A program made the translations under genes and the position numbers. Source: Lepidodermella squamata (taxonomy: Eukaryota > Animalia > Gastrotricha). Taken from it: a stretch of DNA of 64,000 nt. The stretch covers positions 1,116,001-1,180,000 of the forward strand of contig JBLDXI010000019.1 of the NCBI GenBank assembly GCA_047495785.1, read 5' to 3'. Positions 15,251 through 57,898 of the stretch are shown in pieces; the first letter of the stretch is position 1; the number at the start of each line of letters is the position of its first letter. The notes beneath the pieces are model-generated. The model saw nothing but the letters and a program-made list of their open reading frames with translations, had not been told where the DNA came from and made no database searches.

Positions 15251-15300
15251 GATTATTAAATTTCTAAAAATTTATTTGTTAAAATGCATAATTTTTCCAG

Positions 15301-17433
15301 CTAATTACCAAGTAAATGTTCGAGAGAAGCAGTGATTTTAACGCAGTCTATGAAAGAACCATCAAGTAATTGCAACACCGATTTATAATAGAGGTCTATA
15401 ACTGAAAATTTCATGTTATATAAACCAATCAAAGCGTGTCCGTCGAATTGCCCAAACGCACTCGTTAAAGTTTCCATCTTCTCAGCAATCAGCCATTTCT
15501 CAACGTCAGAATTTGTCCATTTACGCACTTTTGCAAAATTGGCACCTTCTGGAGGGTCAAGCTGGACCTTTCGGCTAAACTTTTCGGCTAATAGAGATTC
15601 GAGAAGGCTACAACGCCGACAAAATTGCCCTGTATCGTGAGAATTAACGTCGATTTGAGGTTTTTTAGGCGCTGAGGTTGTTAAAACATTCTGATGATGA
15701 ACTTCCACAGGTTTCTCAACTTCTTGGGAAAACTCGGCTTCAAGTTGACGAATTTCTGTCAACAGACGGTTCGAAACTTTTTCAAAGCTGTGCTTCTCGA
15801 GTGAAAAGTCAATGTAGAGCTTGGTTCCAAGGATAATTCCCAGCCAGCCGGTAGGGAAATACCGATACTGCATGTTGATAGGAATGAACGGTTTGCCCAG
15901 TTTGAATACGTATTCCGCTTCACAACGGCACATGTTCGAAATTCGGTAGCTTTCCGAGTAACAAATCAGCACAACACTCGCGTTTTCAACAGCCTGAGCC
16001 ATGGCCTCCAACGTGCTGCCTCGCATGCGGTCAACATCGACCCAAACCTTGAAGCCCTGATCTAAGAGTAGTTGGCGAATTTGTAGAATAACATCTTGCT
16101 GTTTCCACGAATAACTTATGAAAATGTGCTCATCTTTCGCGGCTTTTTTCTCATTTTTAGCCTCGCTTTTCTCAATAAGACCTTCCTTGCCGAGTAGAAT
16201 AAAATCACGAGCCCGCTCAGCTTTCATTTTCAGCTGTTCGTTTTTCGTGCTTGACATAATTTCGTTCAACTGCTGAACGACGTCTTGCCTTTCCTGGTAC
16301 AAATTACTGCAAATTCAAAAAATTTCGAAGATGGCGAAATCTACCTTAATTTTCGAGCGAATTTCATCGCTGAAAGACAACGTCCAAAGGCAATCTATAG
16401 CGCACCATTGCTCGATCTCTTGTTCCTCAAGTTCATTTGGCGAATCGTGCGGTAGAAGCATTTTGTACAGGTCATCAATCGTGTCGCCGTCAATGATTTT
16501 CATTTTATTGTCATCATTCACGGCCAGAACAGCCAGGCTTGCTACCAGCTCTTCGGCAGAAAAGCCGTTCGACGTGTGATCATCACTAGACATAGCTTCG
16601 TGGAGGCATTGGGTCATTTTCGGAATTATCGAATATTCATCGAGTAAGTCGTTGGTAGCGGTTGTTTCGCTGAGTAAACAGGCGATGGAACAGAACGCGC
16701 TCACCTGCATTTTCTCGTTAGGAACCGCGAAATAATGCTTCAGAGCTTCGATAGCCCCTGCTTCTTCAAATTGCTGTCGAAGTTCGGCTATTTTTGCAAT
16801 GTTATGAATTGTCGATAGCGCATTCGATACAACGCGCTGCTCCATATCGTTGGACAAGCTCAATTTAGCAGTATCGGATTTTATGTATTTCACAAGAACA
16901 GGTAGCACTCCCTTTGCAGCAAATACCTTCGAAAAAACCGATTTTACTTTCGAATAAAAAATATTACGCTAAACCAACTTTTGCAGTTTCAAGGCTTGCG
17001 TCGCTAAACATGCAAATCAAAGCCATAGCACACTCTTTGTGAAAAAGGCGAGAGCGAGCAGGATCTTTCTCCCATCGGAACACGTAGCTGACTGGATTCT
17101 TGTCATTCATTACGTAAATCAAGGATTTAGCGAGAAATTCTTGGTAAAGCAATTAAACTGAAATTGCTCGAAAAATGGGGCTATTTGAATCTTACCGTTG
17201 AAACCGGGGACGGTTTTATCTTCAGCTATAAGCTTCCTCCAAGGGCGCCATTTGAAATATTTGGTGTAGAAGTCCATATGCAATAGGACGGCTTTGGCGG
17301 TGCTGTAAAATTTTGCAATGTCGATCTTTCCGCCGCTACTGGAAATGGTTTTCAGCACTAATGAAGCCATTTTTCGAAAGTATTCCACAGCCTTATCCTG
17401 CGTCCATTCAGCATCGCCATCAGCGTCACCCAT
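15301..17433 (-). CDS. ARM-TIR-SAM protein B
   Basis: ARM-like exons (IHNIAK, DCLWTLSF). TIR: HIFISYSW..WVDVD..CRCEAEY. SAM-like WTNSDVEKWL..FDGHAL. Confidence 0.9.
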
Positions 17434-17505
17434 TTTCAATTTTTTTAAATCCTAAGAGATGAAAAGTCATTTATAGAAAATTTCAAATAATTTATGTAAA
17501 AAAAT

Positions 17506-19887
17506 CTAGTTTGCTGTATCCTCCAAAGCAGCCGTGAATTTAACTGTTAGAGGGAAGGAGTCGTTGCACAAACGTAGCACAGTTTTGAAAAATAAATCAG
17601 GCGCCTGAAAATAATTTTATATAAAAGGCCGTAAGTTCATTTTTTGTTCAACTTACGGAACTTTTCATATCACGAAGACCTGCCAACGCTTGGCCATCGA
17701 AGTCGCCGAAAGATTTAATCAAATCATCAGGAAAATCTTTACTTCGAAGCCATGACCCAACTTGTGAGCTTGACCAGCAATTTTGATTTACAGCTTTGGA
17801 ATCGCTTCTTTGGGATTTTTCAACTGAACTGAAGCTTTCGTTAGCTTCGAGTAACGATTTCGTAAGAGCTTCGACCAAGCCGTAGAGCTTGTCGACTTTT
17901 TCGGACAACTGTCGACAATCGCTACAATTTGGTTTGTCGACTGAACTCGGAATAACAGCCCCGCTTAAATTTGATGGTCGATTCGAAGGCTTTATTGCTG
18001 TTTGATTGGCTTCGCCTCGCTCAAGTACACTAATTTCCTCTAATAATTTGTAGAAAACATCGTTGAATGGCCGTTTCTGAAGTGAAAAATCGACGTAGAG
18101 CCTCGCGCCGATAATAATCCCTAACCAGCCGTCAGGTTGATAGCGGTACTGAAAATTAACTGGAATGAACGGTTTTTGAAGTCGGAAAACGTATTCAGCC
18201 TCAGTTCGGCACATATTTGAAACTCGATAGTCCTCGCTGTAGCAAATGACAACGACGAAAGCTTTTTCTACCGCATTAGCCATAGCTTCCAAGGTTGAAC
18301 CATGCATTCGGTCGAGATCGAGCCAAACATTATAGCCGTTTTCGACTAGAGCATCTCGTATTTTGACGACAATTTCCTGCTGTTTCCAGCTGTAACTCAG
18401 GAATACGTGGCCGTCCTTACGGTTGATGATTGCTTCAGACCTTTTGGCATCTGCCTTGGCTATCATCCCGTCTTTCCCTAATTTTATGAAGTCCAACGCA
18501 TTCCGAGCTTTCGCCTTCAAATCGAAGTTATCTTCATCTTTCGTGATTTCTTCCAGATTGCTCATGCATCCAGAATGCTCGACTAGAATTGATTTTCTCA
18601 CTTCTTCGTTGAAAGCTAGCCGCCACAGGCATGTGATGGCTCGGTCTTTGAGGACCGCATTTTGCGTAAGCATGTTATTCAAATTTGGCAACATTCCGCA
18701 AGTTAAAAGCTGCAAAAATATTATGTAAAATTTATCACAGGAAGCAGTGAAAATCCACCTTAATTTTGTTCTCCTCATTTATTGCCAAATTAGAGAGGAC
18801 GTCTGTCAATTCCTCCGCTGAGTATCCGCGATAGGCTTTCCTTAGCTTCTTCTTCATCGCTTTAGAAACGTAATCGACCAGTCTTGGAATTATGTCTGAA
18901 GATGAAAATTTCGAATTATAGGACTAATCTGAAAACTGAATAAATTACTGTATTCGTCGGCGAAGCTGTTAGCGTCTTTGTCATTTAGGATATAGGACAA
19001 AACACTGAGGGCTGTCATTTGCGCTCGAGGTTCTGTTTCGTCGGGCAGGTAGAATTCCAATATTTCAACTGCATTGCATTGCTGGAATCTTTCCCTGCAT
19101 TCTGTCACTTTTGCAACATTATGAGAAATCGACAGGCTTTGAATTGCCAAGCGAAAGTGAGCCTGCAAATGATTTTGTTAAATTGGAAATTATGTAAATA
19201 TATCGTTGAACTCACGGCTTTTTTCAAATTCGACTTGATTTCGTTATCATTCAGAATTTCCATTAATTTGGGGATGATCCCATTTTCTGCGAAAAACTTT
19301 ACACAAAATTGATTACTTGGAATTTGAATAGGCTAGAGATTACCTTGCTAGCCCGATAGCTGCAATCGGTAATGACTACTACGACCCGAAGCAAACTAAT
19401 CGCATAAGTCATATCGCTGAGATAATCACATTCCTTGACGGCTTGAAGAATCAACTCTGAAATATTCATGAAATAATTTTATGGAGAAAATGTGATAGTT
19501 TCAATTACCCATGAAATCAGTCCCGCATATCCCTTCAATTGCAGGGACCCGCCACGCTCTCGCCCATGAACTCATCGAGTTGCAAATTCTTCGATAGACG
19601 AACGACGTGAATGCAAAACGAAGCCTGTTTTGATCATCAGCCGGCTTCGATGCGACCATGGCTGAGATTGCATCAGCCCTGTGACGTAATTCTTCGATCG
19701 CCTCTTCCTTCGAATGTACTTCGGACGTTTTCTTCAACCCAACGCCAAATTTGGTCAATAAATCATCGGCATCTTCTTCCTCCAAGTCTTTCGCTGAAAT
19801 TGCTGGTTCTTGTGATTCGGCTGAAATTTCTTCGGCGTCGAATAGTTCATTGTTAGGCTCCTCCGATTCTTCAACACTGGATGCCAT
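17506..19887 (-). CDS. ARM-TIR-SAM protein C
   Basis: Acidic N-terminus MASSVEESEE, ARM-like exons. TIR: HVFLSYSW..WLDLD..CRTEAEY. SAM-like WSSSQVGSWL..FDGQAL; last exon APDLFFK..AN*. Confidence 0.88.
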
Positions 19888-19936
19888 TATATAAATAGTA
19901 TTCACCTAGAAAATTTAATTTCATTCAAAAAAGATA

Positions 19937-22078
19937 TCACGAAGAATTTTCGCTCACAACAACAGGTAAACGTTCAAGAGATTCAGAAAACTTCAAAACA
20001 TCAACAAGCGAATTATCAAAGCACTTTGTTAGCGAGGAATAAAATATTTCTGGTGATAACGTTTTCATCTCGTAAATCACAGATAAATGCCGCCCTGTCA
20101 TGTCCTTCAGCAAGCTAGAAATTCGAAAATTACTAGATAGAGATTGGGTTTCAAGCCATTTTTGAACGTCCTGACCGGTCCATTTGTCAAGTTTAGATTT
20201 CAGGTAGGCGATCGACAGCAATTTTCGCCCCGCTCCACTTCCAGGCAACGAAATTTCCAGCTGTTTTTGTTTAGGTGGATCGACGATTTTCGCAGCTGAG
20301 TGAGTCGAAGGTGCTTCTTCGTTCTTCGAGTTCGATAGCAAGCCATTCATCTCAGTTAGCATTTTAGAGATCGCTTCTTCAAACGGGGTCTTCACCAGGG
20401 ACATGTCAACGTAGAGCCGAGCTCCAAGAATCAACCCTAACCACCCGTCAGGTCGATAACGTCGCTGCATATTGACCGGAACGAAAGGTTTTTGAAGTTG
20501 AAAAACGTACTCAGCCTCAGTTCGGCAATTCGGGCTCTGTTTATAATCTTCGCTGTAGCAAATCAGAATCAGGCGAGCTTTCTCGATAGCAGATGCCATT
20601 GCTTCTAGCGTGGATCCTCGCATTTCGTCAACATCCATCCAAGTTTTGAAGCCTTTGCTCTTCAAAACATCGCGGATTTTTATGCAAGTTGGTTGGTTTT
20701 TCCAGCAGTAACTAATGAATATGTGCCCGTCATTCGGCGAAGGCACAGCCGATTCACTGCTTTTTGATAAGTTTTTCTTGCCATTTTCGATGAAATTCAG
20801 AGCCTTCGAGGCTCGAAGACTAAGACTCGGCTTGCTTTCATCCGCAGCTAGTTCCTTCAGTTTCTTCAGGATGGATTGGTTTTTTAGAATTTGCAGGCGT
20901 TCGTTTTCACTGAAAGAGAGTGTCCACAGGCAATCAACGGCTCTGAGCTGCTCTTTTTCTTCATTCGAATTCAAAATGCGATCTAGAACAGGTAGAATTC
21001 CCGCGGCGATGAATTTCGGTTTATTGGATTCGCAGATCATTATTTGGTTCGCCCCATCAGCCAATTCTTCGACTGAAAAGCCGAGGTACTGATGATTCTG
21101 AATGCTCATAGCTTCGTCCATGAACGCTATCAATGTCGGGATTATTCCTGGAATAAAAATGAAAAAGAATCATAAATCGAGGGGCTGGGCATTTCGAGCC
21201 TAAAGTTGAATTTTTAACATTGAATAACTTTTCGAACCGTTTTCATCGGCGAATTTCGCGCTGTCTTGCTCGCTGGAAATGCTGGCGATCAGCATAAGAG
21301 CCATACATTCCCAGACCTTCTGCTTGCAAGTCAAGTAGAACTTCGCAGTATCCACAAAATTCAGCTCGGCCAACTTTTGCCGACATCCCGCGAAACGTGC
21401 GATGTTATGGGGAGTTCCTATGTGGTTTTCTATCATTCGATTGACTTCAGCCGAATTTTCGATCATTTTGCGCAGCTCAGGGCTATTCAGAACCTGGCTG
21501 CACCACTTGAGATACGCATCGCCCTCAAAAGCCATGCACATCGAGAAAGCTTCGCTGAAATTGGACCAAGTTACAGCTATCGAGGATAGATAATATGCCC
21601 ACATGAGCATTGATTTCGAAGTCGGCAACTTGCCGATATCAAACCATTGAACACATCTCGCTAATACCAGTGGCAAATCGTGACTAACTGCTTGGGAATC
21701 AATGATTTCCTTCCTGTGTGAAGTGATTTCCAAATAACTGCACATGAAGATCGATTTCACGACGTGGCGAGCTTCGATATTTTCCAGCAGATCTTCCTTA
21801 GTTTTGGCAGCCCGGTCTACGCATGCGCCAAGGTCTTGAACTAGTTTTTCGAAGGTAGCAACGCCAGTGTTAGATTCACTCAAACCGCCATTTCTCAGCG
21901 AACCTAGAGCTGACTGGAGGCGATCGCGGTCGAATGCGTAGAAATCAGTTGGAGGTGAGTCAATTGACGCGGAACTGGTAGCTTTGGGTGATTTCCCAGA
22001 ATTCGAATGGTCACTTCCTTCTCGGTTTGATTGAATAGTTTTCTTCGATGGAATCACGTGCGATTTTTTTTTATTCAT
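19937..22078 (-). CDS. ARM-TIR-SAM protein D (two exons)
   Basis: ORFs 21200-22078 and 19937-21133 are joined by a phase-1 intron. TIR: HIFISYCW..SPNCRTEAEY. SAM-like WTGQDVQKWL. Confidence 0.9.
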
Positions 22079-22202
22079 TTTTTGATAATTGAGTCACCTA
22101 AAACAATAGATTTACTCATTAAAACAGCAGCCGGAAAATAAAAATTGCACAATATAAATTGCATCGGGTATCGAGTATATCATCGGGTATAATTTGGCAG
22201 CT

Positions 22203-25200
22203 CTAATCGTCATCCCACAGGCGATCAAGGGCGCCTAAAACTCTCAGTAAGCCCTGCAGAGGCCCGTTGTAGTGTTTCGATACTGTTTTATAGTAAAACT
22301 CTGGGGCATTCGATTTCATGGAATGCAAAGTCTGAAGCATATCGCCGTTGAAATCGTCAAAAGCGTGTCCAAATCTAAAATCAGAAAATACTGATTTTGC
22401 CGAAATCAAAATTCGAAACTCACTCGGACAATTTTTCGCTTTCAAGCCACTTGGCGACTTCCTCTTTCGACCAAGTATTGCACTTCAATTTTCGTACGGA
22501 TCTTGGTCTCTCTTCAATCGGATCGTGAACAGCAGTACTGTGCCCGCCTCCAATCGCCTGCCGAGGTTGGGCGGGTTCAGTAGAGGGTTGCTGCGATTCT
22601 GAATTCGATGAAGGTGGCGCCTCCAAAGACCCGAAGGCTTTTATTTCTCCGATCAACATTTCGAAGGCGGTGTCAAATGTCCGCTTCTGAAGCGACATGT
22701 CGACGAATTTTCGCGACCGAACCATAATTCCAAGCCATCCATCAGGGAAATAGCTTGAAAAATATCAGGAATTCAAATAAAAAGACTAATGAATTTCCAT
22801 TCTTTACTGGTATTCCAAATTAACAGGAACAATCGGTTTGCTGAGAGCATGAGCGTATTGCGCTGGACGATTGATAAGAGGTTCAGAGCAAATTAATAAA
22901 TTTAGGTTGATTAATCACCTTCAGTGCGACAGGGGTTACTTTGCTTGTAAGAGTTCGAGAAGCAGATCAGTACAACGGAAGCTTTTTCAATCGCATCAGC
23001 CATTGCTTCAAGCAAATCTCCGTGCATTTTGTCAATGTCCATCTAGATATAGGTAAGATATATTTATATAATAGATTTTCTCAAATTCAAAGATGGAGCT
23101 AACCCAAACTTTGAAATTATTTTTCATCAGTTCTTGTCTGATTTTCAAAACAACAGCCTGTTGTTTCCAGCTGTAGCTGATGAAAACGTGGCCACCATTA
23201 GGCGAGGCCGACTTCCGGCCGCCACTGTCTTCGTTCGAAGCCTCAGCCTCGGCAACTTTGACGACCCATTTTTCAATAAAAGTCAACGCTTTCGTTGAGT
23301 TCCGGCGCACATCAGCCGAGGTTTCGGCAGAACTGCTGAGTTTCCGCATTTGACCCATAAAATCATACTGGCTTTTCAAAATTTGGTTTCGAGCCGATTC
23401 TTCGAAGCTCAATGTCCATAACAGATCAACGCCAAGATTTTGCAGATTAGCTTCGCCAGTCTTCAGCAAGTAATCAATGACTTCCTCGACCTTATTTTCC
23501 ATTAAGGTGGATTTAATCGAATCGTTAACTGCGATCAAAGCAAGTCCCTCGATCAGTTCTTCCAGCGAGTAGGCGCAAGACATAGTTTCAGCGCCCCTCA
23601 CCAGTATATTGCAGTATCTGTTAGTATCTTCCATTGCTCTTTTCACATATTTTACTAGATGAGGTACAACATTCTGCTCGTGAGCCATTTGTGCCGCTTC
23701 AGGTGTATCGCTGAGAATGTGGGCCAAACACAATATCACGAGGGATTTCGTTAAATCGGACATATTTAGATATTCCCTGAGAATCTAAAACGAAAATTTG
23801 CCAAATGTTCACGATATTGTAGCCAAGTTACATTAACGGCATCGTATTTGATGAAATCGCCTCGTAATTCGATACTGCGGGATATGTTGTAAGTCACGTT
23901 CAAAAGAACGAAATCCAGATACTACGAGCATAGATGAATGCTGAAAACTGAATTTATTAAAGATTAAAAATGCTCACTGTATCTTTTGAGCTCAGGTTTC
24001 TTTCCGCTTTTTTCCGCTCGTTTAAATGATCCAGCAAGAGCTTTATGACGCCAGCTTTTCCCAAATCCTGCATTCATTAAGCTGAATTAATGCTTCAATC
24101 GGTAAAAGATAACACACGATTCGAAATTGCGGGCAGCAATCTGTAAAATTCCATAGACCAGATACTAAGGCGAGGCTGCAGTGATAATTTTCTGTTACAG
24201 CGATCCCATTTTGAATGTAGAACTGCAGGTATTTAAACACAATATCTGGAGAAAATACCAAATGATAAGCTTTCAAAGGCTTTGCAGTTGGGAAAACAGG
24301 TCAGACCTGCGTATTTTTCACTCAACAGAGCATCGAGCAGATCTTGCTTCCAAATTTTGTATTGCTGATAACTGGTGCTCATCAAGTTGAGAACAGTGGC
24401 GATTTCGCGACTAGCCATTTTATCAGGAGTGAGCTCGGCATGCTTCGCCAAAAATTTCACTCGAATTTCCGTCTCGCTTTTGATGTCACTCCTTGCGACG
24501 AAGTTCGAATTCTTCTTGGTACAGAAACCCTGCTTCGGAACGAAAGGACCATACGCATCGGCTTCATCCTCTTTATTCTGGAGACGTCTCTGCCAAGCAT
24601 CGTATTCGTGGTAAAACTCCCTTATACGGACGCTCCTGCGAACATCCTCGAATGTGAGATCACCAGTCGTCTCCGACATTTTATAAACGGCCATAGCCCA
24701 ACCTTGACTCATAGAATGCTTGCAGTAACTCCGAAATAGCAGAGAGCCGATTTCTTGATCAGTTTCATCAGGGCTCGAAACGAATGTCATAACAAATTGA
24801 ATAAGATTTTTCTTGGCAAATATGTCTTTCTCTTCGAATTCGCCACGAGCCACATCACGCCGAACTTTCCACAACAAGCAGTAGTAAGCATTAGCGATTT
24901 GTGACACATCGAAACTCATATAATAGTCGTCCTCGCTATTTTCTATCGCCTTTTCGATGCCGTGTTGTAAAACTGAGCTCAAAGCAGCAAAATTATCGAC
25001 CAAAAAATCGCCGAGACCAACTCTCGCCAAGCAGAACGAGGCGCAAAACCTGACAGCTTTATTGTCAACGCCGCTAAGTTTTTCCAGAACCTATATATTA
25101 TTATAAATAATTTCATTGGCTAAAATTTTATTTCAACTCACTTGTTGAGCCTTCGTCGCCCTTATTTTTTCAAAACTACCAGCTTCAAGAGTCAGTTGAT

Positions 25201-25885
25201 TGATTACATTCAAAACTGACTTCACAACGTGCCATTTTTGCTTTGGAAAATTATTGGAATAAATACAATTAATTTTTCAGGACCAAATCCTAACCGGTGG
25301 ATATTCCTCGGGTGGGGTTTTTTCTGCAATATGCTCGAGAAAATAACAAACAGTTTCCAAATATTCGACCAGAAGAGGTAGAATGCCGCTATCGAGGAGG
25401 CTCTGTAGGTTAAAATTCATCAAAATCGCCGCAATTTCGGGGCTAATATTACATCTTTAAACGCAGAAAACTTCGAGTAGTTGAACAATGAGTTGAACAA
25501 ATTAATGGAAAATTTGTAAGTCGCATCATCCGTTGTTGGTCCAACGTCGAACAAGTACTTGGCTAGCGTGATAGACAAATCTATTTAAATATACCATCTT
25601 AATAAAAAAAACTAGTTCGAATGATCATTTACCGACGTATTTGCCATCAACTAGCACCTGTGCAACATCTGTGTCCCAGTTATTCCAGTCAAAATAAGAT
25701 CGGCTAATTTTCCACATAACGGCTCTTGACTCAGCATTGACAGGTCCATTTTCAAGTAGAGCGCATTTTTCCAAAATCGAGATGCGCCTTCTTGTTTCTT
25801 CAATGCATTCTTCAGCCGTGGTAAAGCTAGCGTTATCATTAGCGATATCGCCACCCAAATCAGGGGTGGGAGTGGGGGATTGCAT
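22203..25885 (-). CDS. ARM-TIR-SAM protein E with extended/duplicated N-terminal helical region
   Basis: Spliced frame from MQSPTPTP through ORF 24233-25030 to the ARM exon 23032-23763. TIR: HVFISYSW..W|MDID..SNPCRTE|AQY. SAM-like WSKEEVAKWL..FNGDML. Confidence 0.82.
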
Positions 25886-26515
25886 AGTTATAAAAACTGT
25901 GCCTATACAAAAAAATATTGCCACTAAATAAGCCAGATATTATCGCTTTTTACTTCATCATCATTCCGAAATTTACAGCGTTCGCTATTCGGTTAATTAT
26001 TCATGATAGCCGATTCGTTTTTTACGTGTGCGGTCAACCGATCAATAATTTTTTTGGCTCATGGTTTTGCAAGGATCGCCAGGTCACTGCGCGTCTTTGT
26101 TTACCCAATGGGCCTATTTGCGAGCAGGCGATCGCCAAGGATAGAGACTACCAAAGTTGCGCAATGTGTATGTGTCATTCTATCCTCGAAGGTAAACAGG
26201 TATTAAGGTGCTAAGTAAGCAAATGGGTACATCAAAAGACACTGCCGCTGCGGTTTCCACAGCTCCGCCCATGTCACATAAAGCAATATAAATATCAGGA
26301 TATGAGCTCTCAATTTCAACACTTCAAAGAAATCAAGCACGCGTATGAATATCTAATGTTCGCGCTATCGCTTCAAAAGTCACTGGAGGGTGGTGACGCA
26401 AGCTGAATCTTAATAAGGCAAATCGCCACGTTGCCTCACAGTCAAAGTTACACCTTAACGCACGCGTCTCACGGAAAACGATATTACTAGAGCTGAAACA
26501 ATAAAAAGCGGAACG

Positions 26516-26807
26516 ATGCATCTCGCGTTTCTTCTGCATTTTTTTCTAGCCGTCACATTACCAGGTAAGCGTGAACACAACAACACTTCACTGTAACTCG
26601 CATTCTTTCCATTTAGCTGCCGCGCTATGTGAAGATTGGCTCGTGTTCGGTAAGATCTTTTGAGTGAACGATGTACCAAGCATCAACAACTTTTCAATCT
26701 ATTTTATAGAGGGTATCGACTTTGCATTTGTTGCCGTCTGCTCAACATTTGTCATCATAATATTCGCATTAACGATCGTGATGTGTCTCAAATTGCCTGG
26801 ACCATGA
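26516..26807 (+). CDS. Signal peptide + single-TM microprotein, family member 1
   Basis: 3 exons, phase-1 introns: MHLAFLLHFFLAVTLP|AAALCEDWLVF|EGIDFAFVAVCSTFVIIIFALTIVMCLKLPGP*. Confidence 0.8.
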
Positions 26808-26873
26808 TAATTCTTTGTTAATAAATGCTTGGCCTTTTCTAACTTTCGTAATGTTCCATTTTAGAATTTTGAA

Positions 26874-27166
26874 ATGAAATTTGAAATCAGAGGCAAATGT
26901 TTGGTGCAATTTCTAATTTGGCTTATACTACCAGGTAGATTATCCCCGTTAAACCGTCAGGATATATTTTTCAGTTTTTATTGCAGTTCTCGTGAATTGT
27001 CAAGAACGCTTTACGCTAAGTAAGTTATATTGAAGCGGTAAATTTGAAATCATTGCTTATTTTCGTAGATTTATTCGAAATATCTCTCATCGCGCTATGC
27101 TCCAGCTTCGTAATAATCATCATTGGACTTTCAATCGTAATGTGTCTAAAAATCAAAAGCTATTAA
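26874..27166 (+). CDS. Signal peptide + single-TM microprotein, member 2
   Basis: MKFEIRGKCLVQFLIWLILP|VLVNCQERFTL|NLFEISLIALCSSFVIIIIGLSIVMCLKIKSY* (exon 2 has an alternative in-frame acceptor). Confidence 0.8.
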
Positions 27167-27317
27167 CTGATTTCCCCATATATTTCTGTAGCCTTTCAAT
27201 ATCAGTATTTGTTTGCTGTGCCAATAACTAGTTTGCTTTTCCGCTAACAACGAGAATTTTGATTTTACAATATAACTTAATCAACTTTTAGAGTCATTTG
27301 AATAAATTTGAGGGCTC

Positions 27318-27559
27318 ATGTCTTACCTAAATACTCATCAACTGTTGCTGTTTACTCTATTAAGTTTAACGTTTCCCGGTGAGTTCATTTTCAAATTGTG
27401 TAACTTTTTAATATCCATGTTTTGTTGACAGATCTGGTAGAAGGGGCTGAACTGGCATTGGATACGTTTTCTGTGGTTTTGCTAACTTTATGCGGTGCTT
27501 TCCTCATCATAATCCTCGCTCTCTCAATCGTCATATGCATCAAAGCAAGACAACCATGA
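27318..27559 (+). CDS. Signal peptide + single-TM microprotein, member 3
   Basis: 2 exons: MSYLNTHQLLLFTLLSLTFP|DLVEGAELALDTFSVVLLTLCGAFLIIILALSIVICIKARQP*. Confidence 0.8.
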
Positions 27560-28184
27560 ACACTTTAAAAATTAAATTCTCATTTTGATATTTGATAAAG
27601 CATCGCTCACTCTTGAAATTTTATATCGCTTTGATTCGATAGCTTGTTTGAAAAAATTTATGATACAAAAGCAAGATTAAACGATCGCTAATAAAAAGGC
27701 GTTATTTTGCATCAAGGCTACTTGTGAACACAAGGTAAACATTTGTAGAGCGTGTCTAATAATGTTTGCTGAGATGTGACCTGTAACCATTTTGCGCTTC
27801 AAATGCGCACATTCTATTTACATAGTCGAAGATAAAGATGCGACACAACGATTAGCATATCTTGCAGACATGACTTGAAATACGACGATAAAGATTGATG
27901 GCTACCAATTGGCTCTCACTTATCACTCTCGAATGGCGTGCTACAAGTGGACGCTTGCGAAGATCGGCGATGCGGAAGGGAGGTGTAAATAAGAGCAGGT
28001 TAATGCTCATCAACTGGGACAGATAATCAGTGACCTTGGTCATCAGACGAATAAAGTGATAATGACAGCGCTGTGTAGAGACACAAACCATAGTCAGAAC
28101 GAATAATCGCTCCTCTCGTCACAATCGCTCTCCTGCTCACCTTGTAATTTTGTGATCGCTCACACAATTTACGACACAGCTCAA

Positions 28185-28494
28185 ATGGCGCACTTCCGAA
28201 TTGGGTTGCGCCTATTCGCAAGTGTAATGCTTGCAATGATTTTGTTTCCAGGTCCGTTTATTTCTTTCAAAATATTAAATTATGATCGATGATTCTATTT
28301 CATTCAGCCCTCGTAAGCTGTCAAACCGTCGCGCTAGGTAAGATATTAGTTTTTGCTATAACAATCAACTGAAATACTATTTGTTCATTTCAGACACATT
28401 TGAAATAGTACTCATAGTACTGTGTTCAGTGTTTCTAGTCATCATCATTGCACTAATCGTCATTCTGTGCGTAAAGGTACCTAACCCCAGTTAA
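28185..28494 (+). CDS. Signal peptide + single-TM microprotein, member 4
   Basis: MAHFRIGLRLFASVMLAMILFP|ALVSCQTVAL|DTFEIVLIVLCSVFLVIIIALIVILCVKVPNPS*. Confidence 0.8.
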
Positions 28495-29501
28495 AGGAGC
28501 CAACTGATTTAACGAACCGAATTTTACGCACAGCCGCGGCACTACTTCATCCGGTGGCTCGCCACTAAATTCAAAGGCGAGATGATCTACATTTATAACG
28601 ATGTTTAATAAATCAAAATCCTGCTACTCAACCTATGTACACTAAATGCTACCTGTAAATAAACTGGCTAATAAGTTTCAATAGCTGAGTTGCAATATTT
28701 GAGTATGCGAGAAGATGAACTAACTGATTCCGTCTATTACTGTCAAAATTGGCTCCTTACTTCCTACGCTTACTTGCTTTGGAAGCAGCCATGCATCATA
28801 TCCTCAATGAGTGAGAATATGGAGGACATTCAATGAGAAAAATTTTCGATGAGGACAGATTCAGAGAAAATTTCCGCTTCTTCGTAAAACGAAAGATGCA
28901 TTGATCCTAAGAGTGCGGACGAAAGTAGAAGTGCAAAGAGTGCTTGTAACGCTTAAATTATACCTACCTAGAAGTAAAAACGGTTCACTTTCACTAAGGA
29001 AATCGGTAGGATGTGGATTTGAAATTCTATGATCCTACGGCACGGAGCGACTGTTTTTCGCGGCGTTTCTAAGGAAGCTGCCTTTCACAACTAAAAATAC
29101 TTAGCACGTGTAAACATTTGATTTTAATTTTCTCGTAGCAAAATGAGAAATATCAGTTTTTAATAAAACTAGCGTTTATGGCAACGGTACTGTTCTCACA
29201 CACGCGTCCACTAAGTCGAGTCGCGAAACTCATGTGCTTCGCCAAATTTCTCGTCAGGCAGGCACCAGGCACCAGTGGATGCCGACCCCTTGCGAAGAAT
29301 ACTCAATTTCTTTGTTGCAGACTGCGAACTTGATTTGAACCATCTTTCGTCTTCTGAGTTATTGCACTCGGGATATATGATACGCCTGATTAACAATGAC
29401 ACTTTGATTACCGCTTATCGCCTTTGAAAGTGACTGTAAATACTTTATTGCAAAATATGTGAGCGTCGTAAGATTCTTTCATCTGAATTACTGAATATTA
29501 T

Positions 29502-29759
29502 TCACTCAGTTACTACTGCAGTGCCCTCATATTGTGATGTCGGATTTGGTATTTTTACGACAGCCACTCCCATGAGCAGCATGATTATTGTTAGGAAGAT
29601 GAAACACAGGAGTACCAGGCACGTTTCTAGGGCGTCTAGGTGAGGACAATGAGTAGTTTTTAGTAGTCAGTATTAAGCTGGCTTACCTAGTTTATCTGCT
29701 TTTACTGCGTTTATTTGCTCCAAAATGATGCTGACAATGAAGAGCATAGTTGATCGCAT
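29502..29759 (-). CDS. Signal peptide + single-TM microprotein, member 5
   Basis: MRSTMLFIVSIILEQINAVKADKL|DALETCLVLLCFIFLTIIMLLMGVAVVKIPNPTSQYEGTAVVTE*. Confidence 0.75.
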
Positions 29760-29860
29760 ATCTGTCGTTGATAGCCAGACCAGTGCTATTTGTTTCGTAA
29801 TAATTTTGCGACCTAGGAAGAGCGAAGTAATTTTATTTTGTATGAAAAGTAGCTCTTTCA

Positions 29861-30166
29861 CTATGTAGACACGGTTGGATTAGGAACTTTAACAATTATG
29901 AGTCCTACGAGACCCAGAATGATAGCGAGGAATATGAAGCACAAGACCACCAAGCAGACTTCCAGAGCATCTGTATTGAGACAGGAATAATTTTGAATAG
30001 ACGTATTGTGAAGTATAATTTACCCATCGCTGCTGAAACAGGTGCTGCGAGCGAAGCAAAGTAAATTTATATTATTCATTAAATTTTTCGGGGATGCATT
30101 ACCTGGAAAAAGGGCAACGTTAATTGCGAGCACCATGCAGATTTCGTTTGATTTTTTGCGAGACAT
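29861..30166 (-). CDS. Signal peptide + single-TM microprotein, member 6
   Basis: MSRKKSNEICMVLAINVALFP|APVSAAM|DALEVCLVVLCFIFLAIILGLVGLIIVKVPNPTVST*. Confidence 0.78.
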
Positions 30167-30375
30167 TTGAGGCGATCGATCGAATTGATGATTAGATCAA
30201 GTAGTCGCATGTCTGCCATAAAATGACAAAGCATATGCCGGTGTGGCACAGGAGCCTTCGGTCAACAATTATCCCATGTTTAATTAGTCGCGGCAATTGC
30301 TCTCACTTGCTCTAAGCTGTCATGTAAATAGCCACTCACTGCTTTTGTTGTAATAGGCTTGTTATTGCTGTCACA

Positions 30376-33300
30376 ATGAGGACGGCGCGGCTCAAAGAAT
30401 TGCCGCCGTCGGTTGTCGACGAATTTATTAACATGCAGCTAAAGAAATCGCAGAACGGTGATGACGTCTTGGCTAATGTCAACTCCACAGATATCCCCAG
30501 CGGAAAATTGAAAGTTGAGTATCGCCTGATAAAAAAGAAGAAGCGTGATTCGAAAGGCGGATTCGTCCTGCCCGACGTGAGTGGCAGCCCTCATTCGCTT
30601 CGCTACACATCACCAACGCCGAATTCTCAGCGGCCTGCGGGTGGACAGATAATTTTGAAACCGATAGAGCACAACGCGGTGCCTCAAGCGATGCCCGAAC
30701 GGAAAATTGTCAGAACACCAGAATTGATCAAATTGTCTTTACAGAGACTCGGCTCGTTTGAATCTGTCATGTTTCCGTTTCGAGGCTCCACTGATATGGA
30801 TTCTATACATAAACAATTGCCTGCTATCGAGCAAACTTCTGCCCTCAGTGGTAACTTTATTTAAATGGAAGAGTAATTACAATATCACTGGCTTTACTTT
30901 CAGCTAATCCTTCCACTATCACTCACAACTTTACTTGTCCGAACTGCAAATTCAATATCGTGAAAGGTGCGAAATTTTAATATTAAACCAGACTAGCCAT
31001 AATCTTTGCATGATTCTTAACATTTTTAGAGCTCTTTGTCACCGTAACTGAAGATGGCAGCTCTCAAAGCTTACATGAAAACAGAAGACATCACAAATGT
31101 AAGTTGAAATTAATTTTGTCATTGTGAGTAGAATTGTGCATGACTAACAAAAACAGCCGCCGAAAGATCCGATTCAAACACAGGGTCTGTAACAATGGGA
31201 ACTCAAACCGAAGCAGATGCCATATCTGGTTCTCCCGCTTCTCCGAAAATGTCCCCAAAAAGTAATGAAATTAGAAGTCGCGTGTCATCTTCACTTGAGA
31301 TGACAGTAAAAGAGAAAACAAAACCGGTGTCTCCATCTCCTCCTCGAATTCCTACTCCTGCTCCTCCACCTGTTGTAGTAGATAGTACTAGTGTTACTAA
31401 AGGTACTTCTGACTTGAGTTTGCTTGGGTGAATTTTAAGTTGGTTTATGTTAAATTGATTGATTTAGTAGCATTGTTCTGCTATTTTTTATTAAATTTTG
31501 GAAAATAACGCTTATACGTTCGTTTTTCCTCATTAGAAACCGAGGCTGAACCTGAACCAGCTAAATCTCATCGAGAGTCAGCCAAGCCCGATCATCTGAG
31601 CATTGAAGATCTAAAATTGATCGAAAAGTGCCGTAAAATCGTGAGAGCAGCCGAATCCAATGGAGATACGGAACAGATTCATTCAGCCATTCGTCAGCTT
31701 TCGGTAATTGCTCAGAAGCTGCTAACGCCGATGAGGGGCTCCGATCTTCATCACAATCGATTTGTTTGCGGGAAAATCGGAGATATGCTAGTTGAGGAGG
31801 GCTTCGATATGCGGCTCTACGCGATTCTACACGAAATGACAGCTGAGTGGAGCTTTTTCAGCCAAGAAGAAAATTATCATGTCACATTCAATTTATTCAC
31901 CTGCCTTACGTCATTCCTTAACCGGAGTTTGAAGCTTCCAGCCGTAATTTTCCTCAATCTTGCTTTTTCATTGTAAAATCTGTCATTTTTTCCACAGAAT
32001 TTGGTCGAAAACACAAAGTTTACTGGGGATATATTGCAAATTCTGGGCTATAAAAAGTATATAAATCAGTTGACGCAGAAAAATATTTGGCGGTTTTTCG
32101 ACGCATGTCTAACAATTCTTTGTTTGCTGGGTCGACTTGAAGCGAATATCGAATCTCTTCGATCTCTTGGCACCATTAATTGTGCGAAGAAATTTCTGTC
32201 AACCGGAGATCTAGGCTACGCTGGCCTATGGCTCCCCGCTCTGGTTACTATGAACCAGGTCGCGAATGATGACGAGATCGGAAATGCGATCAAGGGAAAA
32301 CTTCCAGATTTCGTGCCTACGGTTTGCAGTTACATCACATCGTATTTCGAGGACGAAAGATCAGCAGGCGATGAAACTTATCGGTCTATGCAGATGTCTG
32401 TTCGAGACAATTCGGACCAAGCTGCCGGCGAGTCTCAGCGTCAAATAAATGCTACAGGGATGATGCCAGTTGGTGCTGGTGTTGTTCTGGTTGAAGCTGT
32501 AGACGCATTCTTGCGATTCCTCGGCGTTATTATAGCCAAAATTCGCGAGATGAGCAGAGACTTCCAGTTGACGCAATCTGAACTCGACGAACTGACCGGG
32601 TGCTCGATTTTCTTGATGCAATTACCACATCCATCTAACCAGAAGCAATACGAGTCTAAGCAATTGATTGTGAGCGAGTGGCGAAAACTCGTGAAATCCG
32701 GCGTCGAAATAGGCGATTTCTGTGAAGAGGCTGCCTCGCTATTGAATCTCGGCCTCGGGCATGATCAAAATGATCTTAAAGATGAGATGATTCAAGCTCT
32801 CAGGGATTTGATTTCGAATGAATTCAACGAGGGGACGATTAAGGTGGAGGCTGAAGCTTTGTTAGCGAAAATCCAGCACCCTCGTGTGCCAACTCCGGCC
32901 GCGAGAAGCGTTACGGAAACAATAGAACACTCGCGGGTTCAAAATACCAACGAAATTCCCGATGTTGACCGGGAAAAAACCGAAGCTCAAACTAACAATG
33001 ATAACGGTAATCACCAGATTAAAACTTGACGTAGTTTCTATATTTCGGTTTTTATTTCACAGTTTCCGACTCTTTTTCCCTGAATGAAATAATATGGAAC
33101 TCCTCACTGGTTTCGTGGCAGAATCCGGAAGTTCGAGCCTGGATCCGATCCATCGGTCTCCGCAAGTACGAGGAGGAGTTCCAAGAATACGACGGGCCTA
33201 TGCTACTAGCATTGTATGACGTTCGCCGCGAATCACCGCAATACTTCCAGACGGAGATGGTGGCCAAATTGGGCGGCGTCTTCAATAATTTACTCAAATT

Positions 33301-33400
33301 CACAGCCCAGCTAACTAAACTCATCGCAAACAATAATCTAGGCTCGGGATCAGCCGCGGGTGGTGGAGATCAGCTGTCACTAGCTGTGAGCGGAGTATAA
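30376..33400 (+). CDS. ARM-like + SAM-like protein lacking a TIR domain, with long low-complexity N-terminus
   Basis: Multi-exon, with helical-repeat exons at 31617-33006. The last exon WQNPEVRAWIRSIGLRKYEEEFQEYDGPMLLALY..SPQYF..LLKFTAQLTKL matches the C-termini of genes A-E. No FISY/TIR motif. Confidence 0.78.
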
Positions 33401-33618
33401 ATTCTAAAACTTTGTGCTGTTTCAATGAAATACTTCGTACAATCAATAATTTGTAGCCAAAATAGCTGCTCCGTTGTTGTACCTTAGAAATAAACTGTGT
33501 TTCAACGTTTACTTCAAGGTTAAAAAATCGAGGTCGATAATTTTTACATCAAAAAGCTGTCATAATAATAATACATTTGGCGGCATAATATTGAATATAA
33601 TTTTAATGTATGGGTTAA

Positions 33619-33986
33619 TTATCCGACGTATCGAATTTTCATGAGACACACAATAACAGCGATGCCGAATAGAGTCACAACCAACACGCAACCCAGCACG
33701 ATGCTGATGATGTCGCGAGTGTCTGAAGAAAGAAATAACGTAAAACATGAGAAAAACAGGGCAATAACTCACTTAACACGACCTGACAATTGACGTGGGC
33801 TGTTGCAGGAAAAAACGAAGATTTTTTTATATTACATTTTTATTTAATGCCGTTGTTGTTATTGCAGTTACCTGGGAGGAATAACATGAAGCTCACAATG
33901 ACACCAAGCAGCTTCTGCCATCGTTTTTTACTGAGGCCGGGCAACGCCGGTGTGGCGCGAAAATGCGTCCGAAACAAGTTAAACAT
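33619..33986 (-). CDS. Signal peptide + single-TM microprotein, member 7
   Basis: MFNLFRTHFRATPALPGLSKKRWQKLLGVIVSFMLFLP|AHVNCQVVL|NTRDIISIVLGCVLVVTLFGIAVIVCLMKIRYVG*. Confidence 0.75.
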
Positions 33987-34121
33987 TCTATGCGCCTAAA
34001 ATTTGGGAACAAAAACCCATCAGAATTTTCGAGCTGTGTATTATGAAAAAACTTCATATAGGAGCTATAAATTTCAACTGGTAATAATTAAATTTGCTTA
34101 GTCTTTCAATGCAGGATCCGA

Positions 34122-34385
34122 TCACACTCCGAACAGCTTTACTTTCCATAAGCACAACACCAACGCGATGGAAAACAGGATAATTATGATCAAACTTCCA
34201 ATCACCACGTATATTATGTCCGATGTCGCTGAAAATATCGAAGCAAATAAAAATAATTTAGAAAAAGGTATTGGTTTACTTAAAGCCTGGCAGAGGACAG
34301 TATCCGGAAATGCGACCAAGAAAAGTACCAACAGCTGCATATAATACGTTATTGAAGATTCGAATCGCATTTTAGCGAGAGACAT
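34122..34385 (-). CDS. Signal peptide + single-TM microprotein, member 8
   Basis: MSLAKMRFESSITYYMQLLVLFLVAFPDTVLCQAL|TTSDIIYVVIGSLIIIILFSIALVLCLWKVKLFGV*; the intron is stop-free and in frame in the ORF track. Confidence 0.78.
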   Translation of the reverse strand: MSLAKMRFESSITYYMQLLVLFLVAFPDTVLCQALSKPIPFSKLFLFASIFSATSDIIYVVIGSLIIIILFSIALVLCLWKVKLFGV

Positions 34386-35005
34386 TTAAAAATTGCTCAA
34401 GTCAACGACTGCACGGCTATGCGCTTTGTGAGCAGCCCAGCTAGGACAATATATTCGTTATTCTACCGAGATATAATATTATTTCCGGTTGGACTGATGA
34501 GGCACGTGTAGATATGGTTGGTATTCGGAAATATTTCTGTCTTGCGCTGGGAGTGTTTGTTACGGGTTTGTTTGCCTGTGCATTTATTTCGACACCGCGC
34601 CATTGCAGCGGTAATTTTTCTGGTGCTTTATGACTGGCGTGAGGGGCGCGAACGTTTACGCTCTCGAAAGACGCTATCAATGACATCGTGTGCGTATATT
34701 TTGTCGTGCCGCAATGCAAAGATTCTCAACAGAGTTGCGCGTTTCTCCCGCGCCCATTTGATACCGTTAAGATGAGTTGATGGTTTATTCTCATTATTTT
34801 GTGTTTATGGCCTCAACCATAACGAGAATTCTCGGAAGTAATAAGTAATCAGCCCACCTTGGTTTTACGGTAGATAGTGGTTTTCGCTGAGAAGCGTCGC
34901 TGTTTTGCGCCGCTTGACTGTCACGCGTCTCGTGTAAATGATTCTGCTGCGTCATTTGTATCGCTCTCAAACAGGGGAAACACTTCGAGTACTCAGAGGC
35001 AGTCT

Positions 35006-35323
35006 TTATTTCAAAGATCTGAGTTTGAACAAGCACAGAATAACAGCGATGGTAATGAGCGTTAGTGTCAATGCCAAACCAAGCGAAATTACTATTAAAT
35101 CTGAATTACCTGAAAAAACCAGCTTCATTTTCAATAGTTCATGAGATTAGATAGCCAACTTACTCAAGTACAATCCACCGCCAGTAGAATATTGGCAATT
35201 GGATATGCCTGAAAAACAATACAATATGCTTCGCAAATTTTTATTTTACGAAAACGTACTTCCACTCAATAGGGCGGAGATCCATACTAAGTTTGGTAGC
35301 AAACGCTTGTTAGATACCAACAT
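35006..35323 (-). CDS. Signal peptide + single-TM microprotein, member 9
   Basis: MLVSNKRLLPNLVWISALLSG|SISNCQYSTGGGLYL|SNSDLIVISLGLALTLTLITIAVILCLFKLRSLK*. Confidence 0.75.
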
Positions 35324-35437
35324 AAACCCTTAGATTTGATAAATTTCTAGTGGAAAAGCTAAAATATGCAATGCAAATATATCGGAGAACTGAAAATTTA
35401 TTGAGACCCAACTATGACAATATTTTGTTTCAATCAC

Positions 35438-35706
35438 TCAGGGACCGAACAGCGCCACTTTCCACGAGCATAGAATCAGCGCTATTATCAGGAAGCAAAT
35501 CACGATTGTCGTTCCAACAATGATAAGAATAACCTCTGATCGCGCTAAAGATGAACGCAATAACCCAAGTTAATTATTTATTATTATTCAATATCCAACT
35601 TACTCAGCGGTAACGAAGGTTGCTGGCATGAAGCTTGGCTGACCAGATGTAACAGTATAATCAGTGATAAACTGAATGTTAAGTTGGATGCTTTACTCAA
35701 AAGCAT
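35438..35706 (-). CDS. Signal peptide + single-TM microprotein, member 10
   Basis: MLLSKASNLTFSLSLIILLHLVSQASCQQPSLPL|TRSEVILIIVGTTIVICFLIIALILCSWKVALFGP*. Confidence 0.75.
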
Positions 35707-36411
35707 TGTTTTATTCAGCTGCATTTATATTAGAGAAGGGCGAAGTACAGTGAAGAAAAACAGCATTTTATCTATGCATATCATAAGCGAATAAAAGCAT
35801 TTCGAACCATTTTGGTTTGTTCCCAATAGTCAGAATCCGTGATGGTGTTCAGCAATGCTCGACTCGTCATCAGCCCTTCTTTAGTGGCGAAGCTACTTGA
35901 TACAGCGTCATCAAATCGATATTAAGGAAGCATTATGTTGGTGTTTGCCACCTAACACCTCCGTTCCGCATGATAGCAGGACGCGATGGAATGATCCTTT
36001 CGTTCCATTATGCCTAATTTTGATGGCGTCGAGAATCTGTACTGCCAATGTTCATACGTTCAACAATCTGAGTAACTGTTTCTCAAGTCATGCAAATCGT
36101 ATCAATTCAAAATTGGCGATGAAAACATACACTCGCTCTATTGAATTGGTAACTTGAAAAATCGCTCTTGCGCAACACTCCGAGCATTTTGGCTGTTTCC
36201 TAGCAGTGCAACAGTTATGCATATTCGGTTCATGCTGAGCACTTCAGATTCAAAAACACATTTTCGCGCTTCAATTTGGCTGAATAGCCATTCAGTACAT
36301 GATATCCCAGACTTTGTTCCTTCACAAAACGTCTCGCCATGTTCCACTTTGGATCATCGATTTCCATCTCGGCAAATAAAAGCTGGAACAGTATGAGGAT
36401 TGTTAAAGCAA

Positions 36412-36491
36412 CCAATGGGTAGAATAGGCCCATTCGGCCTATTGGTATTGCCATTATCGCTTCACATTGGCCTATAGGCTGAGATATAAAA
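36412..36491 (+). promoter_or_regulatory. Putative polyubiquitin promoter: three CCAAT/ATTGG boxes and TATAAAA
   Basis: CCAAT at 36412, ATTGG at 36441 and 36466, TATAAAA at 36485-36491. A candidate 5'UTR intron 36622-36925 ends 5 nt before the ATG. Confidence 0.5.
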
Positions 36492-36906
36492 CCGCAATTC
36501 ACAAAAAAACCAGAAAAGCGCGCGCAAATTTTTTTTATCGAATGCAGCGAAAGACAACTTGAAAAAAATAGATATTAGTTATAGATCATATTCTAACAAA
36601 CCAAATTTCCAAATGATTAAGGTAGCTATATTTATGACAAATCACCTTGACCTGATGACTCGTAAACAACCTGAAAGCTGACGCCGAAACAAAGAGCGGT
36701 GTGTACTGACCGGTTTGTTTTTCTGTCAGTATTCAGTTTTTCTCACTCAGCTCTCAGTTCCTAATTCTTAGAAGTTTATTCATTCTTGTTCATCAATCTT
36801 GCTCATTTTCCATTTCCAAACTTTCTCTTTTTCTCAAGACATACGACATTCTGCTTGGTCTGCTTGTTAACTCTATGTGATTGGTATTTACATATCTAGA
36901 AGTTAG

Positions 36907-38307
<1,401 letters not shown>

Positions 38308-48908: not shown

Positions 48909-49002
48909 TTTTGTTTAAAATTTTTCCCTAAAAATACATAATTTTGGTATTAAAGCTTTAATTTATATTAAAAAATGACTGATTCATAATGTTAAACCCG
49001 CT

Positions 49003-50211: not shown

Positions 50212-50529
50212 CTCTCAACAATAATCGACTAACAAATAACAATTAATGTGGATTTTTCATTACCGAGATTTGAGATAGATTAAAACAACGCGAAATAGTC
50301 AGACACCGAATAAGATAATCGCAGCAGATCAGTCTAAAATTGAGCAGCTACAAGTAAAAATTGCATAAAATGGCAAGCGATGTAAAATTCAGCACAACGG
50401 CGTATTTTGATTCTTTTTAAAACTGAGATAGAAGATAATATAACTAGAATAAAAATAACGACTGGAAGAGTGAAGTAAAAATTGAGACTCGATCATGCGT
50501 TAAAAGTCAGTTGTTTCTTCGTCGAAAAA

Positions 50530-53554: not shown

Positions 53555-57898
<4,344 letters not shown>

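Follow-up and report, generated by a model that had tools for sequence, protein, structure and literature searches.

Single-helix microproteins such as FXYD proteins, regulins and KCNE are a known class of membrane protein, and one that is badly under-annotated. FXYD proteins are small and single-pass, of type I topology, and pack their helix on a pump, the signal peptide being cleaved in some of them; the juxtamembrane Cys of FXYD1 is S-acylated. Regulins (phospholamban, sarcolipin, insect sarcolamban and DWORF) have 30–60 residues and one helix, regulate a pump by intramembrane packing, and are tail-anchored, with no signal peptide and a cytosolic N-terminus. Here we describe ten very small spliced genes from the gastrotrich Lepidodermella squamata, found in a stretch of 64,000 nucleotides (nt) of contig JBLDXI010000019.1 (assembly GCA_047495785.1, positions 1,116,001–1,180,000, forward strand). 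This stretch is hereafter termed the window, and coordinates refer to it unless a contig is named. We hold with high confidence that these are real coding mini-genes whose products are membrane microproteins under selection.

FXYD (PF02038; phospholemman, the Na,K-ATPase gamma subunit) is the described system closest to the family in architecture, sharing with it a short ectodomain, one helix, and a juxtamembrane Cys with basic residues, and it offers the best functional analogy. The gastrotrich products differ from it, however, in having no F-x-Y-D in either species (L. squamata and the relative described below), no conserved Gly pair in the helix, no conserved boundary Ser and far shorter tails; PF02038 was absent from the Pfam results for the ten helix exons (E ≤10) and for the whole mature member 3 (E ≤1), and the family is not a member of FXYD. 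The likeness to regulins is that the product is essentially one helix, but here there is an N-terminal signal peptide, and a Lys lies C-terminal of the helix, giving the opposite orientation. An E of 7 for one member against the Pfam model Phospholamban was dismissed as noise. Adaptors carrying an immunoreceptor tyrosine-based activation motif (ITAM) or YxxM (DAP12, DAP10, FcR gamma, CD3 zeta) resemble the family in signal peptide, very short ectodomain, single helix and membership of small or tandem families; unlike them, its members have no charge inside the helix (the acidic residue stands at the outer boundary), no ITAM or YxxM, no YxxL/I pair, and tails of 5–17 residues. The original prediction, made from the letters of the window, had likewise stated that the family has no FXYD motif and no ITAM and that regulins differ from it by their absent signal peptide, and the sequences bear this out, an N-terminal hydrophobic region being present in all ten members.

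KCNE proteins (PF02060), which have 100–170 residues and a glycosylated ectodomain, gave no Pfam match, whereas the products here have 59–81 residues and outer stubs of 6–15. SMIM3 (PF17307), stannin, TMEM52 and SMAGP, among the nearest clusters by language-model features (0.81–0.84; SMIM3 0.84), are of similar size with one helix; kinship to them was rejected, the scores being below 0.9, with no Pfam match and a resemblance that is generic. A type I, short-ectodomain topology, predicted from sequence, fits the features of the products (a signal-peptide-like N-terminus, a helix of 23–24 residues and a Lys after it), and the generic class of signal-peptide single-pass microproteins fits their open reading frames (ORFs), partial splicing, selection and helix prediction.

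Ten mini-genes and the plan of their products

The window is animal DNA, dense in genes, with GT..AG introns of 49–72 nt and a guanine-plus-cytosine content of ~43%. Ten spliced models were rebuilt from the sequence, each with two or three exons and a product of 59–81 residues, and all run in frame from ATG to stop after removal of GT..AG introns of that same size range. As the original prediction had claimed, the small genes number ten, lie in three clusters (+ strand 26516–28494, members 1–4; − strand 29502–30166, members 5–6; − strand 33619–35706, members 7–10) and have phase-1 introns: every model closes, and the phase is 1 in 16/16 introns. Because introns split the frames, ORF tracks miss the family. 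The stop-to-stop fragment of member 9 (34125–34385) is uninterrupted. The models and two associated non-coding features are as follows.

26516–26807, + strand: member 1, 59 residues; exons 26516–26564, 26617–26649 and 26710–26807; introns of 52 and 60 nt
26808–26873, + strand: spacer of 66 nt between members 1 and 2; AATAAA at 26820–26825; a pyrimidine-rich ...TTTTAG acceptor ends at 26864, 9 nt before the ATG of member 2
26874–27166, + strand: member 2, 63 residues; exons 26874–26934, 26987–27019 and 27069–27166
27318–27559, + strand: member 3, 62 residues; exons 27318–27378 and 27432–27559
28185–28494, + strand: member 4, 65 residues; exons 28185–28251, 28308–28337 and 28394–28494
28495–28660, + strand: 3′ untranslated region (UTR) of member 4; AATAAA at 28607–28612; nucleotide-conserved block at about 28508–28579
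29502–29759, − strand: member 6, 68 residues; exons 29687–29759 and 29502–29635
29861–30166, − strand: member 5, 64 residues; exons 30103–30166, 30024–30044 and 29861–29970
33619–33986, − strand: member 10, 81 residues; exons 33872–33986, 33773–33799 and 33619–33722; 135 nt downstream of member 9
34122–34385, − strand: member 9, 70 residues; exons 34280–34385 and 34122–34228; its 51-nt intron is open in frame by chance
35006–35323, − strand: member 8, 70 residues; exons 35260–35323, 35164–35208 and 35006–35109; 114 nt downstream of member 7
35438–35706, − strand: member 7, 69 residues; exons 35604–35706 and 35438–35544

No unit shares its ATG, signal peptide or stop with another, and a poly(A) signal (AATAAA or ATTAAA) lies no more than 200 nt away in eight of the ten. 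Members 1–2, 2–3, 5–6, 7–8 and 9–10 are close neighbours, spaced by 66–150 nt, and the layout makes it likely that such neighbours are co-transcribed in the manner of an operon, the transcripts probably being resolved by trans-splicing, for example at the acceptor ending at 26864. The 77-nt spacer between the relative's counterparts of members 1 and 2 shows the same arrangement, AATAAA and then ...TTCTTAG directly before the ATG.

The products share one plan. An N-terminal hydrophobic region, usually ending in F/L-P, leads to a site with small residues at −3 and −1 (Cys, Ala or Gly at −1), and the next residue is Gln in seven members and Glu, Ala or Asp in the others. There follow an outer stub of 6–15 residues (ending, for example, in ...LDTFE, ...LNLFE or ...DALE), which in every member places an acidic residue at the helix's outer edge; an uncharged hydrophobic stretch which by hydropathy calculation spans 23–24 residues (26 in member 3); and, after the helix, a Lys that is invariant (10/10). 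Cys-x(1-2)-Lys stands at the inner membrane edge in 8/10, members 5 and 6 being without this Cys, and C-x14-C is confined to members 1–4. The original prediction had described the signal peptide, short ectodomain, acidic residue and helix, the Cys-x(1-2)-Lys of eight members and the C-x14-C of members 1–4, and these were confirmed. Its further claim that the mature products are almost pure transmembrane helix is supported by AlphaFold2, which models residues 2–27 of member 4's last exon as one helix, ending at the Lys, with a predicted local distance difference test score (pLDDT) of 90.5.

Cleavage at the predicted site would leave a product of ~38–45 residues, often with Gln first, in which the outer stub is followed by the helix and an inner tail of 5–17 residues. 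The residue before the cut is Cys, Ala or Gly interchangeably, across paralogues and orthologues alike; these are the residues allowed at −1 of a signal-peptidase site. Because it swaps with Ala and Gly at −1, the Cys before Gln is assigned to the signal peptide rather than to the ectodomain of the mature product; it is probably removed with that peptide, forming no disulphide. A type I orientation, with the N-terminus outside, is predicted because the Lys that opens the inner tail fits the positive-inside rule. The inner-edge Cys of eight members is a candidate site of S-acylation, a Cys at the inner boundary beside a Lys being the textbook context for that modification.

A profile built from the helix exons of all ten members (alignment A1) recovered exactly these ten from 2,028 six-frame fragments of the window, at 42–53 bits with the next best at 6.6 bits, a scan that is circular in that the ten are the profile's training sequences. 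A profile of members 1–4 alone found members 5 and 6 at E 2e-5 and 7e-3, and one of members 5–6 found members 4 and 3 at E 1e-7 and 5e-3, so clusters 1 and 2 are firmly one family. That cluster 3 (members 7–10) belongs with them is weakly supported, by full-length local alignments of members 9 and 10 with members 1, 2 and 4 that beat shuffles of local-composition blocks (p 0.002–0.008 overall; p ≤0.002 for member 9 with members 1 and 4, and 0.002–0.008 for member 10 with members 2 and 4). These matches extend from the last part of the signal peptide (F/L-P ... V-x-C-Q) across the acidic boundary to C-x-K, and introns stand at the same two positions in cluster 3 as in clusters 1 and 2. Within cluster 3, member 7 is a paralogue of member 9 (z 14.3; proportion of synonymous differences, pS, 0.71; of non-synonymous differences, pN, 0.36) and member 8 of member 10 (z 14.0). 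The paralogues of the window are old, those of cluster 3 included (pS 0.6–1.0, pN 0.27–0.52), and because its paralogues are equally old, cluster 3 appears to have kept its open frames, splice sites and common plan for long; the age of all the duplications also made a comparison of intron with exon nucleotide identity between paralogues uninformative. The original claim of one family of ten thus stands for members 1–6, which have mutual profile matches, and only weakly for members 7–10, which have no helix-profile match to the others.

Orthologues, selection and transcription

The wntless exon of the window (51501–52946) has a 72% identical match (P0001) on an environmental contig, L001, its next-best matches, in insects, a flatworm and a nematode, being 34–37% identical. 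Gene order is kept on L001 as well, the corresponding part of the window (46146–57429, − strand) holding a zinc-finger protein, wntless, an orphan protein of 400 residues and a carnitine acyltransferase. For the orphan gene flanked by clusters 2 and 3 (the middle gene; 32001–33029 searched) there was a single match, 35% identical, on contig L002, which is collinear with window 22000–33400 and carries an ARM-TIR gene, the family and the orphan middle gene. The A1 profile located seven helix exons on L002, four on the + and then three on the − strand, as in the window; fragments of the family called there as ORFs score 30–31 bits against it.

Members 1–6 have one-to-one orthologues (o1–o6) on L002, in the same order and orientation. 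An extra paralogue, o5b, lies between o5 and o6 (L002 7894–8087 and 8126–8381 being the o5b and o6 region). Starts and stops are kept; o2, o3 and o4 equal members 2, 3 and 4 in length, and the intron positions of o3 (one) and o4 (both) match those of their counterparts, while o2 has one intron against two in member 2. Helix exons are 68–88% identical between the species: 68% for member 1 (L002 5544–5636), 84% for member 2 (L002 5867–5962; 77% at the nucleotide level over 99 nt), 71% for member 5, whose tail KVPNPTVST is identical in o5, and 68% for member 6. The mature part of member 3 is 76% identical to that of o3. Member 4 and o4 agree in 48 of 65 residues, and in 34 of 38 over the predicted mature part, where every substitution either exchanges Ile, Val or Leu for one another or falls on the final residue; members 3 and 4 keep their outer stubs unchanged. 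Of the genes used for comparison, the orphan middle gene is 35% and wntless 72% identical.

Codon-level conservation in a relative, by which the original prediction would have its genes judged, was present. Between the species the last (helix) exons have a pS of 0.76, which is saturated, against a pN of 0.164 (non-synonymous divergence, dN, 0.185), and pN reaches 0.40 in the upstream signal-peptide exons; judged by these substitution counts, the helix exon is shown to be under strong purifying selection and the signal-peptide exons under weak selection. In an alignment of 13 helix sequences from clusters 1 and 2 of both species (A2), F13, I17, L20 and K27 are invariant and L6, C10 and I16 nearly so. 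Conservation of its columns is periodic, with a peak at 100–110 degrees (p 0.004 by permutation), and one face of the helix is fixed, comprising L6, C10, F13, I17, L20 and K27.

Alignment at the nucleotide level was limited to the helix exons, the mini-exon of member 4 and ~85 nt of the member 4 3′ UTR, a blastn match of 28375–28579 to L002 7157–7356 (72%) running ~85 nt beyond the stop of member 4. This conserved block (28495–28580; L002 7277–7356) has a core resembling GCACAGCCGC..CACTA.TTCATCCGGTGGCT, and a short AGCCGC/GTGGCT stem is possible. From its conservation the block may be a regulatory element; an Rfam search of 25500–36500, the block included, gave no match.

Two public read runs, X1 and X2, were mapped over 26400–32399. 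X1, labelled RNA as a guess, behaves like RNA, with patchy coverage and four GT..AG joints in the neighbouring gene at 30376–32400; X2, with even coverage and a difference of ~1%, is DNA of another strain or of the source itself. If X1 is RNA, as its pattern indicates, members 2–4 are transcribed and one intron is spliced. An X1 joint at 28337/28394 leaves out 56 nt bounded by GT..AG, and these coincide precisely with intron 2 of member 4; X1 depth covers the 3′ part of member 2 (27000–27199), a contig lies on member 3 (27421–27511), and contigs on the 3′ UTR of member 4 (28548–28642) end ~30 nt past the AATAAA at 28607. The original prediction had named junction reads as a check on its introns, and the outcome was partial, with intron 2 of member 4 spliced as predicted and contigs on members 2–4, and none on members 1, 5 and 6. 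The many X1 joints of the ‘opposite strands’ type (e.g. 27319/27421 and 28456/28535) were set aside as apparent artefacts, hairpin or chimeric contigs produced by assembly at low depth. Among the X2 variants listed, those in coding sequence (27482 in member 3; 29918 and 30028 in member 5) are synonymous in 3/3 cases, and the other 30 listed over 26400–30400 fall in introns, UTRs or spacers, though coding sequence makes up 29% of that stretch; among these variants, the sparing of protein sequence is a supporting hint of selection.

Family status and possible role

Database queries consisted of exons and open frames, spliced full-length proteins being aligned only locally (translation, pN/pS). 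The original prediction had not recognised the family, and nor did these searches. The helix exon of member 6 gave no match in a word-based search for homologues, and the A1 profile had 0 matches at E ≤0.001 in 1.84 billion representative proteins. At that database size the ten members themselves would reach E ≤6e-6, and the library therefore lacks both them and any close kin; the limit of power is ~35 bits, below which the relative's fragments, at 30–31 bits, would be missed, and what is absent from the public protein collections searched is therefore the family and anything scoring above ~35 bits against the helix profile. No family was matched in Pfam by the ten helix exons or the mature member 3 at the thresholds given above, and the open frame of member 9, o1 and the neighbouring genes yielded no Pfam match to a known family for the microproteins. 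A profile search of the PDB at E 10 gave no match, two scans of Joint Genome Institute (JGI) metagenome contigs, with alignments of members 4/o4 and 3/o3, brought up nothing, all the nearest clusters by language-model protein-atlas features fell below the tool's lead level (0.9), and nothing was found in the literature on gastrotrich microproteins. A scan for bacterial promoters and terminators, not relevant to an animal genome, stayed near shuffle level. On these comparisons the family matches no described one and is, as far as sequence can tell, a new, lineage-restricted family of single-helix membrane microproteins.

Taken as a whole, we consider it moderately probable that the products are lineage-restricted type I single-pass microproteins that work by helix packing, with accessory subunits as their probable role. 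On this account the signal peptide would be cut after Cys, Ala or Gly, leaving a bare type I helix with a short stub and tail; the fixed face would pack side-to-side inside the membrane; and the proteins would serve larger membrane proteins as small accessory or regulatory subunits, after the logic of FXYD, KCNE and regulins. A purely anchoring helix needs hydrophobicity and not a fixed face, and side-to-side packing is suggested because one specific face, rather than mere hydrophobicity, is fixed. The accessory role itself, drawn by analogy with those systems, is put forward tentatively. The palmitoylation suggested in the original prediction, and its idea of regulators, adaptors or oligomeric pores, are likewise conjectural.

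Several observations weigh against this account. The conserved face fits self-association as well as it fits the binding of a partner. Signal-peptide cleavage, orientation and acylation are all predicted by sequence rules, and trans-splicing at the family genes is predicted from their layout. The RNA nature of X1 is a guess, its depth on the family is low (~4–12), and within the mapped stretch members 1, 5 and 6 have no X1 contig. Helix-exon profiles of members 7–10 and members 1–6 do not detect each other in either direction, the periodicity of conservation within cluster 3 is not significant (p 0.10), and the 2.4 kb of L002 downstream of the orphan middle gene hold no counterpart of cluster 3; the evidence from orthologues comes from one relative. 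Nor is the N-terminal plan fixed. The first exon of o6 is 13 nt long and o6 apparently lacks a signal peptide, which would oblige it to enter the membrane as a signal-anchor protein; o1 (L002 5175–5639), a single exon of 154 residues, combines a signal peptide with an N-glycosylation sequon and a proline-rich ectodomain of ~110 residues, yet keeps the helix of member 1 and its KLPGP tail. Because o1 bears an ectodomain on the same helix, the family can carry, gain or lose one.

That the helices assemble among themselves, as homo- or hetero-oligomers forming a small channel, a viroporin-like pore or a membrane-organising bundle, is unlikely, and less likely than an accessory-subunit role, even though the conserved face fits self-packing equally, the many co-located paralogues could mix, and coronavirus E and stannin are among the nearest language-model clusters (at only 0.80–0.82, below lead level). 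The helix has no GxxxG-type motif and is almost purely aliphatic, with a face of Leu/Cys/Phe/Ile/Leu, and as it offers no polar or charged residues to line a channel, it is unlikely to form a water-filled pore. It is harder still to regard the products as membrane anchors left over from once larger type I surface proteins like o1, with nothing specific to do now. The long proline-rich ectodomain and sequon that o1 carries on the same helix and tail speak for such an origin, as do the fast-evolving N-terminal parts (pN 0.40), but helix exons have stayed 68–88% identical across saturated synonymous sites, the constraint is specific to one face, which a passive anchor does not need, and in members 3 and 4 even the short outer stub is unchanged; we judge this very improbable.

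As little credit can be given to membrane-active or immune peptides tied, as sensors, anchors or effectors, to the adjacent array of ARM-TIR-SAM (SARM-like) genes, which we likewise hold to be very improbable. The family does lie directly beside five TIR-domain genes (TIR_2 matches; array 12953–25885), and a TIR gene followed by microprotein genes is found in the relative too (L002 1875–3502, at least one syntenic counterpart). Because the whole region is collinear, unrelated genes included, this adjacency carries little weight; moreover, the inner tails of 5–17 residues have no recognisable docking motif, and one-to-one orthology with strong purifying selection is unlike fast-evolving immune effectors. 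That the units are open frames arisen by chance, or serve one larger transcription unit as alternative terminal exons, is largely refuted and can be given next to no credence. They are short, closely spaced and absent from public protein collections, but each has its own ATG, signal peptide and stop, with the poly(A) signals noted above, starts and stops are kept in the relative, an X1 contig stops ~30 nt beyond member 4's poly(A) signal, and the gap between members and background in the profile scan is 35 bits.

A bolder version of the packing account makes the family one arm of a genome-wide gastrotrich expansion of tandem single-helix arrays, acting as combinatorial intramembrane regulators, with each paralogue tuned to another complex and possible signalling via the neighbouring SARM-like TIR proteins. 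If true, this would mean that bare transmembrane helices act as regulators on a scale not seen before in an animal; it is an improbable, speculative extension.

Value of the family and neighbouring genes

The family has been kept very long in a phylum with almost no molecular biology. It provides a clean test set, with six orthologous pairs, a defined face, presence and absence of the candidate acylation site, and natural variants that either have or lack a signal peptide or a long ectodomain, and it argues that small invertebrate genomes need splice-aware annotation of small ORFs. Orphan single-pass families are common, and this one alone settles no long-standing question.

The middle gene (30376–33400, + strand), which separates clusters 2 and 3, is spliced, X1 showing four GT..AG joints in it, and contains no Pfam domain. 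On its sequence it appears to be a fast-evolving orphan of roughly at least 800 residues, with the 35% identical syntenic orthologue noted above. Beyond cluster 3 lies a six-unit polyubiquitin gene (36922–38307, + strand); an open frame of 450 residues opposite it is almost certainly an artefact of the repeat.

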